The notes: generated by a model not told the origin, from the sequence alone. 26,641 nt of DNA from Geosiphon pyriformis uo1 (GCA_016748015.1 JAAOMT010000757.1:1-26641), one strand, 5' to 3'. Counted from the stretch's first letter, positions 4,776-21,604 are shown. A program made the numbers and translations.

Positions 4776-5135
4776 AAGCACTATCAGACTAGAGTACCTG
4801 TTTGGGGAGAGGGAACTCTGGAAGTAGAGATAGAATCCTCTGACCTCTAGAAGACCCCTTATGCAAATGCTCTCTCCTCAGCAGCTTGATTGTCCAGTAC
4901 TGACGCTCAGATGCTAAGGTGTGGGGAGCAAATAGGATTAGATACCCTAGTAGTCCACACTGTAAACCATGGAGGCTCCAGGACCCAATCATAGGTGACT
5001 GGATGTGAAGGCTAAAGCTTCCCGCCTGGGGAGTATAGAGGCAACTCAGAAACCCAAATGTCTAGACGGCCCTAGAGATCAGCAGTGAAGCATGTTGTTT
5101 AAATCGATACCCCACGAATCACCTTACCACCTCTA
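4776..5135 (+). rRNA. rns: SSU rRNA module S5 (central domain, about E. coli 637-990); may extend to about 5220
   Basis: ACTGACGCTCAG, GGGGAGCAAATAGGATTAGATACCCTAGTAGTCCACACTGTAAAC, CCGCCTGGGGAGTA, AAACCCAAATGTCTAGACGG, GCAGTGAAGCATGTTGTTTAAATCGAT and ACCTTACC occur in the expected order. Confidence 0.97.
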
Positions 5136-5654
5136 GAGCTATCCATACAGATCCCTGTAGCGTTTGCGAGCTGAGCAAAGGGTTGTAGTGCTAGAGTAGG
5201 GAGCGCTCTCAGCAACTCCCCCGTGCGGACCCCACTCCACCTCCCGCCCTCCCTCCAAGTCCTCGGGGCTCTCCCCCCCCCTCCGGGTGGGTGGGATTGT
5301 CCCCCCCCCGTCTGACGGGTGGGGAGGACTGGAGGGGGGGGTGGAGGGGGACAGAGGGGGGTGTGTCCTGCGAGGAGGGGGGCCTCCGGCCCCCCGACTC
5401 CTCGGGGGGGGGGGGCTTCGCCCCCCACCCGAGCACTCCCCCCCGCCTTGCGGGGGGGGCTCCTCCCCCCGCGCCCCTTTCCCCCCCCGCACTGGGGGGG
5501 GAGGGCGGGGGGAGGAGTCGAGGGGGGGGCTTCGCCCCCACCCTTGTGGGGCTTCGCCCCACTCCTCGCCCCCCGGGGAATCCTGGCGGGGGAGTGCTCC
5601 TCGCCCCCCCGCCTACTCCCTCCCCCCGCTGCGCGGTGGGGAGGAGCCCCCCCC

Positions 5655-5700
5655 GTGCAATTCTTGTTGTCGTAGGGGCTTCGCCCCTACTTCTTCTATT
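5655..5700 (+). terminator. Terminator-like repeat family C (hairpin followed by a pyrimidine tract)
   Basis: GTGCAATTCTTGTTGTC-GTAGGGGC-TTC-GCCCCTAC-TTCTTCTAT. Copies lie near 2903, 3943, 5655, 8795, 15446, 15992, 22018 and 25703, with a reversed copy near 20930-20972. The function is inferred only. Confidence 0.4.
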
Positions 5701-5854
5701 AAGGAGTAAGGAGGTCTCCTATCTCCCCCGCAAGGCGGGGTGAGTAAGGAGGTCTCCTATCTCCCCCGCCGCAGGCGGGGGAGTAAGGTCTCCTATCTCC
5801 CCCGCAAGGCGNNNNNNNNNNNNNNNNNNNNGGGGAACCCCCCGTGGACTCGTC

Positions 5855-6315
5855 GGCAGGCCACGGCCACTGCTGACCCCTGACGTCCGGCCCCATATGC
5901 CTAGATAGGTGGGGCATAGTGACCCGATGGTATCATAAGGGGTGGTAGCCATCGATAAACGGATCATAGCTACTCAAGGGATAACAGGCTAATCCTCTAT
6001 GAGAGTTCACATTGACTAGGGGGTTTGGCACCTCGATGTCGGCTCATCCTATCCTAGAGCTGTAGATGGTTCTAAGGGTTCGGCTGTTCGCCGAGTAATA
6101 GGGTACGTGAGCTGGGTTAAGTACGACGCGAGTCAGTACGGCTTCTATCTACCGGGTAATAGCAAACTGGAGAGCTACCTGTTGTACGCAAGGATCCAGG
6201 TAGGGTGGCCAATGGGGCTCCAGCTGCCATTGTGAGGGACCCTATGGCACTACTGGAATGCTAAGCCACTTGACGAGAACCCTTGAAGGCATCTCAAAGG
6301 GGAAACAGACTCTAA
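5855..6315 (+). rRNA. rnl: LSU rRNA module L11 (peptidyl-transferase 3' half, A-loop and sarcin-ricin loop, about E. coli 2330-2770)
   Basis: CATAGTGACCCG, GGGATAACAGGCTAAT, GAGAGTTCACATTGAC, GTTTGGCACCTCGATGTCGGCTCATC, AAGGGTTCGGCTGTTCGCCG, GTGAGCTGGGTT, SRL GTACGCAAGGA and TGAAGGCATCT occur in order. Confidence 0.98.
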
Positions 6316-6665
6316 ACTGCTACTGACGGATAGCAATCACCCGAGGGGGGGGGGCTTCGCCCCCCCCTCTCCTCGCGCCCCCCGCACTTCGTGCGGGTGG
6401 GGGTGCTCCCTCCCTCCCCCGCTCGCGGGGTGGGGGAGGAGCCCCCCCCGCCTACGGCGGGCGCCCTACGGGCGGGAGTGCTAGAGGACGTGGCCCCCCC
6501 CCGGGACTCCGCCGGGGGCCGGGGGCCCCCCTCCGCCCAGCGCTCCCCACCCGTCCCCGACGGGGGGGGCGAACTCCCCCCGCGCCCCTTTCCCCCCCCG
6601 CACTGGGGGGGGAGGGCGGGGGGAGTACTGGGGGGGGCTTCGCCCCCCTCTCCTCGCCCCCCCCC

Positions 6666-6745
6666 GCACTTCGTGCCCCCGCACTTCGTGCCCCCGCACT
6701 TCGTGCCCGCCTTCGTGCGGCACTTCGTGCGGCACTTCGTTCGCC
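6666..6745 (+). repeat. Short tandem GCACTTCGTGC mini-hairpins (12-15 bp period)
   Basis: The same motif cluster also occurs at about 1540-1585 and 24002-24050. Confidence 0.85.
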
Positions 6746-18921: not shown

Positions 18922-20195
18922 ATCATTCCCCCCCCCCGTCTACGACGGGTTGGGGGGCGACCCACCTGCCCTCGGGCAGGGGTTCGAGCACTCCCCCCCG
19001 CAAGGCGGGGGGGGCGAAGGAGAGGGGGCTTCGCCCCCTCTCCTCAGGGGGGTTGCCTCCGGTTCCCCCCCTGGCCCTGGGGGGCTTCGCCCCCCCCTCG
19101 CTCTAGGGCCCCAGGGCCACTAGAGCGCTCTCCCCTCCCCCCTGCCCGCAGGGCAGGGGGGGGGCGCCCCCCCCGTCTGGGACGGGGGGGAGTGCTCCGC
19201 CCTTAATCCAGTCCCGGGCTCTCCCCCCCCCGCCGGTGGTTGGGGGGTGGGGTGGGGAGATCTCCCCGTGCAAGGAGAGGGGCTTCGCCACCTCTCACTC
19301 GATCGATGGGGGGGCGAAGCCCCCCCCATTCTTTCTTCGCCCCCCCGCACTTCGTGCGGGGGGAGTGCTCGCCCTCCTGGAGGGACTTCGCCCCCCCCGC
19401 CTACGGTCCCTCCTCCCCCCAGCCCTGTGGACTGGGGGGGGAGCGGGGGGGAGTGCTCGATGGGGGGGGGCGAAGCCCCCCACCCATTCTTCGCCCCCCC
19501 GCACTCAGTGCGGGGGGAGTGCTCGCCCTCCTGGAGGGACTTCGCCCCCCCCGCCTACTCCTCCCCCCTACTGCGGGGGGCTATGGGGGGGCCCCGCCCC
19601 CCCTATGGGGGGGCTTCGCCCCCCTACTCCCGATTTGGGAGATCTTGAGTAAGAGGGGGGGCTTTGCCCCCCCTCTATCTCCCCCGCATAGCGGGGGAGT
19701 ATCGCCCCCCCCGTCGTAGACGGGGGGGAGTGCTACTCCCCCCCCGCACTTCGTGCTACTCTCCCCACCCGCCCCCCCTTTGGGGGGGCAGGGGGGAGAG
19801 ATCTCTCTGAGTAGCGGGGGGGAGATTGGAGGGAGCTTCGCTCCCTCCATACACACTCCCTACGGGAGTGTGATCCCCCCCCCCTCCCCCGCCCGCACCC
19901 CCCGTACGTAGTGTGCGGGGGGAGGACGGGACGGGGGGGGGAGTAGACGGGGAGTAGGGGGGGAGTGCGGGGAGTGCTGCTGACCGACGGGGGGCCTCCG
20001 GCCCACCCCCCTCCATTCTGGCAGGGCCTCCGGCCTGCCTATTCGGGGGGCTTTGCCCCCATATATCTCCCCCGCGCGGGGGAGTACCCCCCCGCCCCAC
20101 CTCACGATCGTTCGGGGGGGGGGAGAGGGGGGGGGGCTCCGCCCCCACTCTCGGAGGCCGGCAGAGGGCCACTATGCCCCCGGCCCCCCTACGCC

Positions 20196-20214
20196 CTGTC
20201 TCTTATACACATCT
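20196..20214 (+). other. Tn5 mosaic end / Nextera adapter contamination
   Basis: Exact 19-mer CTGTCTCTTATACACATCT. Confidence 0.95.
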
Positions 20215-20497
20215 CCCCCCCTCCGGGGGGGGGATTGTCCCCCCCCCGTCGTAGACGGGGGGGAGGACTGGAGAGGGCGCGGGGGGAGTTCGCCCCCCCC
20301 GCCTTGCGGGGGGGAGCGCACCCCCCCGCACGAAGTGCGGGGGGAGCGAGGCTCGCCCCCCTGCCCGCCCTCTCCAGTCCTCCCCCCCGTCTACGACGGG
20401 GGGGGGACAATCCCCCCCCCGGAGGGGGGGGGAGAGTCCACAGGGCTGGAGGGGGGGGGGAGGAGGGCAGGGGGGAGGCCACTCCCCCCCGTCCCAC

Positions 20498-20925
20498 TTA
20501 CTCCCCCGCCTTGCGGGGGAGATAGGAGACCTTACTCCCCCGCCTGCGGCGGGGGAGATAGGAGACCTCCTTACTCCCCCGCCTGCGGCGGGGGAGATAG
20601 GAGACCTCATTACTCCCCCGCCTGCGGCGGGGGAGATAGGAGACCTCCTTACTCCCCCGCCTGCGGCGGGGGAGATAGGAGACCTCATTACTCCCCCGCC
20701 TGCGGCGGGGGAGATAGGAGACCTCCTTACTCCCCCGCCTGCGGCGGGGGAGATAGGAGACCTCATTACTCCCCCGCCTGCGGCGGGGGAGATAGGAGAC
20801 CTCCTTACTCCCCCGCCTGCGGCGGGGGAGATAGGAGACCTCATTACTCCCCCGCCTGCGGCGGGGGAGATAGGAGACCTCCTTACTCACCCCGCCTGCG
20901 GGGGAGATAGGAGACCTCCTTACTC
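20498..20925 (-). repeat. Tandem array, 39-bp unit (about 9 regular copies plus variant ends) with an alternating C/A site giving a 78-bp higher-order period
   Basis: TTACTCCCCCGCCTGCGGCGGGGGAGATAGGAGACCTC[C/A] starts at 20532, 20571, 20610 and so on to 20844. It is the reverse complement of the unit seen once at about 5743-5790, 8883-8930 and 25792-25840. Confidence 0.93.
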
Positions 20926-21344
20926 CTTAATAGAAGAAGTAGGGGCGAAGCCCTACGACAACAGAATTGCACGGGGGGGGGCGGCCCCCCTGCCCGGAGG
21001 GCAGGTGGGGGAAGCTGGGACGGGGGGGAGTGCTGCGCCTCCCCCCCGGGGGGCGGGGGGGGGGTGAAAAGGCCACCCCGGTGGGGCGGGGGGGGCCCTC
21101 CTACCCCTCAGAGATATCCTGCGTGCGGGGGGGAGCAGACGGGGGCGGAGCCAACCCGTCCGGGGGGGGGGGTGGGGCGCCCCCCCCCCCCCGGGGCCCC
21201 CCCCCCCCCCCCCCCCCCCCCCCCCCCCCCCCCCCCCCCCCCCCCCCCCCCCCCCCCCCCCCCCCCCNNNNNNNNNNNNNNNNNNNNCCCATCCCCTCCA
21301 CTATCCAACCGACCCACAACAGAACTGGTATTTGGTACAACCAT

Positions 21345-21604
21345 ATTGGCTTGGACATGGCCAAGGATGAACGCTCCCTAGTGGCCTTACACATGCAAGT
21401 CTTACGCTACTTTGGTGGGCATTGGTAAACCATCAGTGCAAATCAAAAAAGAGTGGCTCTAGGGGGAGTGAAGATGGGGACCTCTCTCCAGGTTGGGACC
21501 TAACTGGGATCCATGACGCAAACTCGAGATCCCCCAGTTGGGCGCTCCGCGCGCGCCATTGGAGCGATGGCGCCAAAAGGCGGTTTCGCAGTTGGCTTTA
21601 GCTA
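21345..21604 (+). rRNA. rns: Mitochondrial SSU rRNA module S1 (5' end, about E. coli 16S 8-250)
   Basis: TGGCTTGGACATGGCCAAGGATGAACGCT...TTACACATGCAAGTC matches GAGTTTGATCATGGCTCAGATTGAACGCT...AACACATGCAAGTC. Helix h1 is fully compensated (TGGCT/GGCCA). GAGTGGCTCTAGGGGGAGT resembles GAGTGGCGGACGGGTGAGT. The module ends in TTAGCTA. Confidence 0.92.

Follow-up and report, generated by a model that had tools for sequence, protein, structure and literature searches.

The window analysed here is the whole of contig C703 (26,641 b), one of 792 contigs in the 128 Mb Geosiphon pyriformis assembly, and we consider it likely to be part of an organelle genome, most probably a mitochondrial one, whose small subunit (SSU) ribosomal RNA is encoded in at least six separate pieces interleaved with large-subunit (LSU) rRNA pieces. 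The SSU pieces carry the separated halves of six conserved 16S helices, which are complementary to one another in the canonical register, and they represent one SSU rRNA lineage. Piece S1 pairs with S5 (h2), S4 (h3) and S3 (h4), and S4 pairs with S5 in h19, h20 and the base of h21. Non-rRNA DNA separates the rRNA segments, and they are broken in variable regions, namely the h21 apex and h11 (where S1 ends), the first of these having already been recognised as the S4/S5 break point in a first-pass annotation of this DNA. The pieces and the helix strands they carry are as follows:

S1, 21339..21601, + strand: 16S ~1-248, ending at the 5' strand of h11
h1 of S1, 21347-51/21359-63, + strand: both strands lie within S1
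Open 5' strands of S1, + strand: h2 21355-57; h3 21365-75; h4 21377-85 (plus 21376); h5
S3, 6870..6968, + strand: 16S from ~376, with the 3' strand of h4 at 6888-6897 (plus 6898)
S4, 23775..23912, + strand: 16S ~480-612, h18 and the 530 loop
Strands of S4, + strand: h3 3' 23840-49; h19 5' 23860-62 and 23868; h20 5' 23870-79; h21 5' 23881-93
S5, 4770..5229, + strand: 16S ~620 to ~1000, h22-h24 and h27
3' strands of S5, + strand: h21 4776-89; h20 4905-14; h19 5023-26; h2 5059-61
Open 5' strands of S5, + strand: h28-h30 5064-5098; h31; h32
S6 (probable), 8436..8604, + strand: 16S ~1053-1206, h34-h40
S8, the SSU 3' terminus, 10959..11070, + strand: 16S 1412-1533, the 3' half of h44, and h45 with its GGAA loop
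LSU piece, 22593..22837, + strand: 23S model 686-962 (RF02541, 85.9 bits, E 5e-25; Rfam placement 22590-22840)
LSU peptidyl-transferase piece, 5891..6339, + strand: 23S model 2383-2839 (RF02541, 275 bits, E 1e-87; RF02540, 189 bits)

In Infernal searches with RF00177, whose gathering score is 50 bits, S5 (model 592-1106 over 4700-5235) scored 136.7 bits (E 8e-41), with an alignment that is unreliable past ~5150, and S4 (model 434-612 over 23740-23915) scored 61.4 bits (E 1e-16), above the gathering score. S1 (model 1-248 over 21339-21605, 20.4 bits, E 0.0017) and S8 (model 1412-1533, 24.0 bits, E 1e-4) fell below it, yet both lie at the correct ends of the model. S3 is too short for Infernal, which misses it, and was placed by an ungapped match to E. 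coli 16S 376-397, in which the bulged A6891 is E. coli A397 and G6888 is position 394. Direct comparison with E. coli matched S1 21356-21409 with 18-71, S4 with 509-597 (80% identity), S5 with 749-821 (88%) and also 879-985, and S8 with 1489-1519; S1, S3 and S5 are each unique in the window. Functional sites are conserved across the pieces, namely the 530 loop, the 790 loop, h27 and the GGAA loop of h45. We assign 8436..8604 as SSU piece S6 with moderate confidence on its sequence motifs: these are colinear with E. coli 1053-1115, and its internal h35 is Watson-Crick at 6/6 positions with three double changes (GTGTGT/ACACAC vs. GCTCGT/ACGAGC in E. coli), whilst the whole-alignment score is only ~2.8 standard deviations over shuffles and Infernal did not detect the piece. 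Separately, a unique low-GC island at 18817-18923 holds a 19-nt match (18826-18844) to E. coli 16S 615-633 (89%, E 0.42). The match corresponds to the h21 apex that is absent between S4 and S5, and may be a separate tiny piece or chance.

The register of the pairings was fixed by Infernal alignment to RF00177 for S1, S4 and S5 and by the ungapped E. coli match for S3, with the pair lists set beforehand. The 7-nt h1 loop of S1 aligned gap-free, which places A21355 at position 17, and the S5 stretch from CAAA to GACGG likewise aligned gap-free, which places T5061 at position 918. The helix halves that RF00177 leaves open coincide with the strands named earlier for h3, h4 (5' half), h19, h20 and h21, so that the template alignment and the E. 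coli match arrive at the same register as the first-pass annotation. In this register 45 of the 46 preset inter-piece pairs are canonical, distributed between the helices as follows:

h2, S1 with S5: 3/3 canonical (5/5 with extensions); one double change, U17-A918 to A-U
h3, S1 with S4: 10/10 canonical; two double changes vs. E. coli
h4, S1 with S3: 9/9 Watson-Crick, plus C21376-G6898; five double changes vs. E. coli
h19, S4 with S5: 4/4 canonical; no double changes
h20, S4 with S5: 7/8 canonical, the mismatch falling where E. coli has C.C; one double change
h21 base, S4 with S5: 12/12 canonical; five double changes vs. E. coli

The strands that had been quoted for these helices are all in place: ACAT (21355-58) and ATGT (5058-61), with G21354 and C5062, in h2; CCCTAGTGGC (21376-85) and GCCAACTAGGG (6888-98) in h4; GGATGAACGCT (21365-75) and AGCGTTATCC (23840-49) in h3; GTCTGGTA..GCTT (23881-93) and AAGC..TATCAGAC (4776-89) in h21; and GTAT (23870-73) and ATGC (4911-14) in h20. 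The proposals that h2 is an extendable A-U swap of U17-A918, and that h3, h4, h20 and h21 pair across the modules, were borne out by the counts above. When the registers were shifted by 1 to 12 positions, the best alternatives reached 6/10 (h3), 5/9 (h4) and 7/12 (h21), and across the whole window on both strands an equal complementarity was met at only 1 (h3), 3 (h4) and 2 (h21) of ~52,000 positions. The complementarity between the pieces is far beyond chance. The double (compensatory) changes number 14 in total relative to E. coli and, measured against E. coli alone, they point to long-term constraint on the molecule. Two metagenome scans for relatives in which covariation could be followed gave no match in one case, and in the other only ordinary Bacteroidota 16S with a standard h4.

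The same pairings bear on whether the pieces could be non-functional relics, that is an organelle rRNA gene copy that is decaying or has been transferred, the working gene lying on DNA outside the assembly. Such a copy would fit an SSU that is incomplete in the assembly and the lack of any mitochondrial protein gene there, organelle contigs may have been filtered out, and complementarity inherited from an intact ancestor would last for some time. However, the 45 inter-piece pairs and the universal loops are intact at ~68% identity to bacterial 16S in conserved columns, a divergence at which free decay would have broken the helices. The pieces do not lie within nuclear-type DNA, neither they nor the repeat family described below occur on the large nuclear contigs, and the LSU pieces score up to 275 bits; we judge relics to be quite improbable.

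C703 has ~70% GC over its full length. Self-comparison showed that unique DNA makes up ~14% (3.8 kb) of the contig and that the remaining ~86% consists of dispersed G/C-rich hairpin repeats; the unique islands have ~45-57% GC, and the identifiable ones, which all lie on the scaffold's + strand, are rRNA pieces. The scaffold contains 23 N gaps of 20 or 50 b each. As no helix strand extends beyond its gap-free stretch (3428-5811, 6870-7592, 21288-22515 and 22536-23965), the inter-piece pairings are independent of the gaps. The order by position is S5, the LSU 3' piece, S3, S6, S8 and, further on, S1, LSU 686-962 and S4, with the LSU peptidyl-transferase piece (Rfam placement 5885-6345) sitting between S5 and S3. 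Only one gap-free stretch, 22536-23965, holds two pieces together: the LSU domain II piece, ~900 nt of repeats, and S4. The rRNA homology stops within contiguous sequence and passes into repeats at the 3' end of S1 and on either side of S4 and of S5. The first bases of S3, S6 and S8 each directly abut an N gap (6850-6869 in the case of S3), and as these pieces begin right after gaps their 5' extents are not fixed.

We considered whether the window could instead hold a colinear SSU gene invaded by GC-rich repeat clusters, the scrambling being an artefact of scaffolding and the gene giving one precursor with its inserts kept or excised. The 86% repeated DNA and the 23 N gaps are compatible with this, as are sister scaffolds that amount to ~600 nt ends around a ~4.2 kb gap, the breaks in variable regions (the h21 apex and h11), and the three pieces that start exactly at gap edges. 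It is nevertheless improbable, as the LSU domain II piece and S4 occur within the one gap-free stretch, S1, S4 and S5 are flanked inside contiguous sequence by repeats of at least 0.5-1.3 kb, and removal would almost certainly be needed for kilobase inserts at five or more sites, again giving an rRNA in pieces.

The flanks of the pieces also bear on whether the pieces are joined after transcription into a continuous SSU rRNA by trans-splicing or ligation, which we regard as very improbable. There are precedents: a 2026 preprint speaks of '2 trans-spliced rRNA genes' in Gigaspora margarita (Glomeromycotina), group I intron trans-splicing is reported in Gigaspora mitochondria, and a Diplonema LSU case is among those cited in PMC5633667. 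Nowhere in the window, however, did a group I or group II intron family score at or above the Rfam gathering threshold; the pieces are flanked by simple G/C hairpins rather than intron halves, and the breaks fall in helix apices, where open ends are tolerated. For example, 5 nt after the end of the S1 homology there is a G10-CTCCG-C7 hairpin. Hairpins of the type G(5-21)-CT[T/C]CG-C(5-24) occur 46 times in the forward and 23 times in the reverse orientation in the window, and a G(n)-CTYCG-C(n) hairpin is found 5-56 nt 3' of S1, S6 and the LSU peptidyl-transferase piece, and also of the unique segments whose ends are at 2733 and 11520. As such a hairpin lies within 60 nt downstream of only 5/18 unique segments (P ~0.06), the enrichment is marginal, and a role as a 3' processing or end-formation signal is a lead only. 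The common hairpin also occurs in reverse orientation in a tandem array at 7140-7476, which has six units of 63 b, each with the hairpin G8-9-CGAAG-C8.

That the rRNA is mitochondrial we consider likely, though the trees support it only weakly. The tree of S4 and S5 together placed the sequence on a branch of 3.45 changes/site among high-GC Actinobacteria and gave the best likelihood under a cyanobacterial constraint. Six pieces over 533 conserved columns fell inside Pseudomonadota with 98% SH-aLRT (40-row set), and here the alphaproteobacterial constraint was the best tree, ~29 log units above the cyanobacterial one (cyanobacterial AU p 0.39). Identity to bacterial 16S in the conserved columns is only ~68%. 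An anti-Shine-Dalgarno sequence is usually absent from mitochondrial SSU rRNA, and its absence is unusual in plastids and bacteria. CCTCC is absent from the 3' end of S8, and a mitochondrial origin is favoured for this reason.

A plastid or a reduced bacterial endosymbiont as the source of the rRNA seems quite unlikely to us. Geosiphon lives with Nostoc and other bacteria, the S4 and S5 tree is best under the Cyanobacteria constraint, and neither grouping is rejected. On the other side stand the 533-column set, with its position in Pseudomonadota and its best alphaproteobacterial constraint, and the missing anti-Shine-Dalgarno at the SSU 3' end; moreover, the 26.6 kb carry no tRNA at the Rfam threshold and no protein gene, unlike bacteria or plastids, and no light-harvesting (LHC) genes were found.

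An intact bacterial-type SSU gene is absent from the 128 Mb assembly, in which all four full-length RF00177 matches are nuclear 18S; this absence holds for the assembly, from which organelle contigs may have been filtered out. No second copy of S5 was found in the assembly either. The repeat family of the window recurs on a second molecule, C51, and on nine tiny scaffolds (C198, C233, C408, C451, C405, C180, C105, C178 and C204) of ~5.2-10 kb, each consisting of two readable ends of ~600 b around ~4.2 kb of N, and as these nine gapped scaffolds carry the same GC-rich repeat family, more of the organelle genome exists unassembled. C51 is 12,511 b long, and its first and last 585 b are identical (1-585 = 11927-12511), giving a circular map of 11,926 b. 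It has ~45% GC, with one GC-rich island at ~8300-9200 that shares a repeat with the window. No Rfam match was found on C51, no Pfam family in its 76 open-reading frame pieces, and no long frames under any alternative stop-codon set.

A further SSU piece probably lies on C51. Its minus strand carries AACATGCT and then TTAAAATGG: the 8-mer pairs 8/8 Watson-Crick with S5 5089-5096 (h30), with a double change at 953/1228, and it is followed by the conserved AAUGG motif, a composite found once where 0.0085 were expected in shuffles. This motif follows h30 in all 16S rRNAs. Some 70 nt past the h30 site is ATCGCT, the 3' strand of h29 (5/6 pairs), and near it TGTCT, the lower strand of h28 (5/5 pairs), in which A5064-U swaps E. 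coli U921-A1396. These motifs suggest a piece of the SSU 3' domain with the h30, h29 and h28 3' strands on the C51 minus strand at ~2120-2216. Blind complement scans for partners of h28, h29 and h32 gave chance-level matches. A candidate h30/h41 piece at 2600-2700 of the window ('ACGTACAATGG') was dropped, since it fails to pair with S5, whereas the site on C51 does pair.

Several results weigh against the reading of C703 as an organelle genome with one SSU rRNA in dispersed pieces. A homology-blind RNAduplex energy search ranked the true partner top only for S1 h3 and h4, with narrow margins, and because this ranking barely discriminates, the case rests on the fixed register and not on thermodynamics. 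Compensation measured against E. coli gives no means of placing the changes after the fragmentation; the earlier proposal that the modules co-evolved as one molecule therefore stands as to one SSU rRNA lineage with compensated helices, and not as to constraint since the gene was broken, for which E. coli is the only reference. The terminal branch is ~3.5-4.0 changes/site long and its placement shifts between data sets, with neither an alphaproteobacterial nor a cyanobacterial affinity rejected. The DNA is rich in repeats and broken by 23 N gaps, which leaves the pieces without a secure order or strand, and since ~24 stretches were ordered and oriented by mate pairs through repeats, neither 'scrambled' nor 'all on one strand' is a secure description. 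Parts of the molecule are missing: SSU ~250-375 is absent, S1 ending at ~245 and S3 starting at ~376; the universal 338-358 segment was not found in the window, on C51 or, above chance, in the whole assembly; and no convincing decoding-centre piece (1390-1407) was found in the assembly, where a candidate at C51 8907-8922 (minus strand) was rejected because, by a hand count, only 6/12 positions pair with the h28 strand of S5. Finally, C703 is unlike the mitochondrial DNAs (mtDNAs) of glomeromycotan fungi, with their ~36% GC and intact rns and rnl (PMC4316621), and there is foreign 18S in the assembly.

These last points concern whose genome this is. The assembly itself is that of Geosiphon: C658 encodes an ER-type HSP70 with 100% identity to G9A89_012705 of Geosiphon pyriformis, followed among the matches by other Glomeromycotina. 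That C703 is Geosiphon's own mitochondrial DNA seems doubtful to us, and we lean towards an origin from another eukaryote in the non-axenic sample. Glomeromycotan mtDNAs have, besides the features above, 14 protein genes and ~25 tRNAs (PMC4316621). In the whole assembly the COX1, cytochrome b and nad2/4/5 families had no match, so ordinary mitochondrial contigs were filtered out or never existed. We found no link between C703 and the Geosiphon nuclear genome, as no copies of the pieces or the repeats lie on the large nuclear contigs and there are no fungal-type mitochondrial genes. Nuclear 18S sequences indicate that at least two further eukaryotes have contributed high-copy DNA to the assembly: an 18S on C402 (L002 1506-3575, minus strand; span ~2,070 nt) shares 77-79% identity with the C658 copy of Geosiphon, the alignment having 40 gap openings, and another on C227 (L036 1-875) is 85% identical to that C658 copy and differs from the one on C402. 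The suggestion that the modules are not mixtures of contaminants is thus right for the pieces relative to each other, but it does not extend to the whole contig, which may be non-Geosiphon in an assembly with at least two foreign 18S types. A human origin of C402 was rejected on composition and length (flanks of 43-48% GC, 18S of ~2,070 nt). Amongst other hosts, we rejected a calcareous sponge (no Wnt; nuclear genes glomeromycotan) and a green alga (no LHC; nuclear genes glomeromycotan). Two 18S copies on C659, a large nuclear contig, align gap-free with that of C658 at 95-96% identity; they carry 72 and 91 substitutions (4-5%), a divergence that is unusually high for intragenomic rDNA copies.

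The rest of the window contains little that can be named. Unique, lower-GC segments with no Rfam assignment lie at 948-1089, 2560-2733, 7911-8033, 10803-10938, 11416-11520, 14954-15159, 17684-17790 and 24800-24998; they are probably further LSU pieces. By eye, 14990-15110 resembles 23S ~1920-1960, and 1000-1030 resembles 23S ~460-490. The ten long open-reading frames of the window contain no Pfam family, and a search for contigs encoding two of the window's frames returned no record. ARAGORN called a tRNA-Arg(CCG) of 85 nt at 11993-12077 and a tRNA-Tyr(GTA) of 94 nt at 13773-13866. Both calls are probably false, being over-long, GC-rich and within repeats, and 13773-13866 overlaps a dispersed repeat.

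Ribosomal RNAs in pieces are known from chlamydomonadalean algae, myzozoans, and some euglenozoans and sponges, and in 1988 Boer and Gray reportedly found the mitochondrial rRNA of Chlamydomonas reinhardtii in scrambled pieces. If C703 worked as the Chlamydomonas mitochondrion does, its pieces would be cut from long + strand transcripts into small RNAs, which would be held in the small subunit mainly by intermolecular helices, assembling in trans without ligation so that helices replace covalent continuity. As in Chlamydomonas reinhardtii mitochondria (PMC8660880), there is no intact gene, and SSU and LSU pieces appear interleaved, though the C703 order is insecure across gaps; in Chlamydomonas the conserved core is rebuilt via intermolecular helices, as it would be in C703, the Chlamydomonas SSU fragments being held mainly by base pairing (PMC8660880). 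Chlamydomonas transcribes its pieces polycistronically and then processes them, which we infer for C703. In contrast, Chlamydomonas has four SSU pieces, and its S3 continues without a break from where the 5' domain ends across the central domain, whereas C703 has at least six to seven, the additional breaks lying at the h21 apex and between h16/17 and h18. Unlike Chlamydomonas, C703 has no protein or tRNA genes between the pieces, ~70% GC and 86% hairpin repeats, and a host that is non-photosynthetic or of unsettled identity.

In Myzozoa (Toxoplasma, Plasmodium; PMC11652630, PMC11742926) many short, scattered rRNA pieces form a working mitoribosome, as those of C703 would. Myzozoan pieces are 20-200 nt long and number over 40, whereas those of C703 are 100-460 nt, and myzozoan genomes are AT-rich and tiny with cox1, cox3 and cob, whereas C703 is made of GC-rich repeats with no recognisable protein gene. 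Glomeromycotan mtDNAs (Rhizophagus, Gigaspora; PMC4316621) belong to the same subphylum as the named host and have small inverted repeats and mobile elements between genes, and fragmented genes are reported for Gigaspora (PMC4316621 and the papers cited there). They differ in their ~36% GC, 14 protein genes, ~25 tRNAs and rRNA genes that are intact or at most split. In the calcareous sponge Clathrina the mitochondrial rRNAs are fragmented and lie on linear chromosomes that carry hairpin repeats; such repeats are also present in C703, and in the related calcaronean sponges coding sequences are hard to recognise, as they are in C703 (PMC5633667). Clathrina is, however, an animal, and the host of C703 is not, as far as tested (no Wnt; nuclear genes glomeromycotan). 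Systems of this kind are known, but this one has not been described: its break points differ, its GC content is extreme, and its genome is flooded with repeats and has no recognisable protein genes.

C703 would add a new, independent case of rRNA in pieces, with different break points and in a genome flooded with G/C hairpins. If C703, C51 and the sister scaffolds were the mtDNA of Geosiphon, it would be the first fungus in which mitochondrial rRNA genes are extensively fragmented and interleaved; its ~70% GC would be a mitochondrial record, its protein genes would be unrecognisable or encoded elsewhere, and the view that arbuscular-mycorrhizal fungi and their relatives uniformly have AT-rich mtDNA and unbroken rRNA genes would be overturned. 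If they came from a co-sequenced protist, they would represent an unknown lineage with an extreme organelle genome, and the public Geosiphon assembly would carry foreign eukaryotic DNA, which would be relevant to those who use it for comparative genomics.

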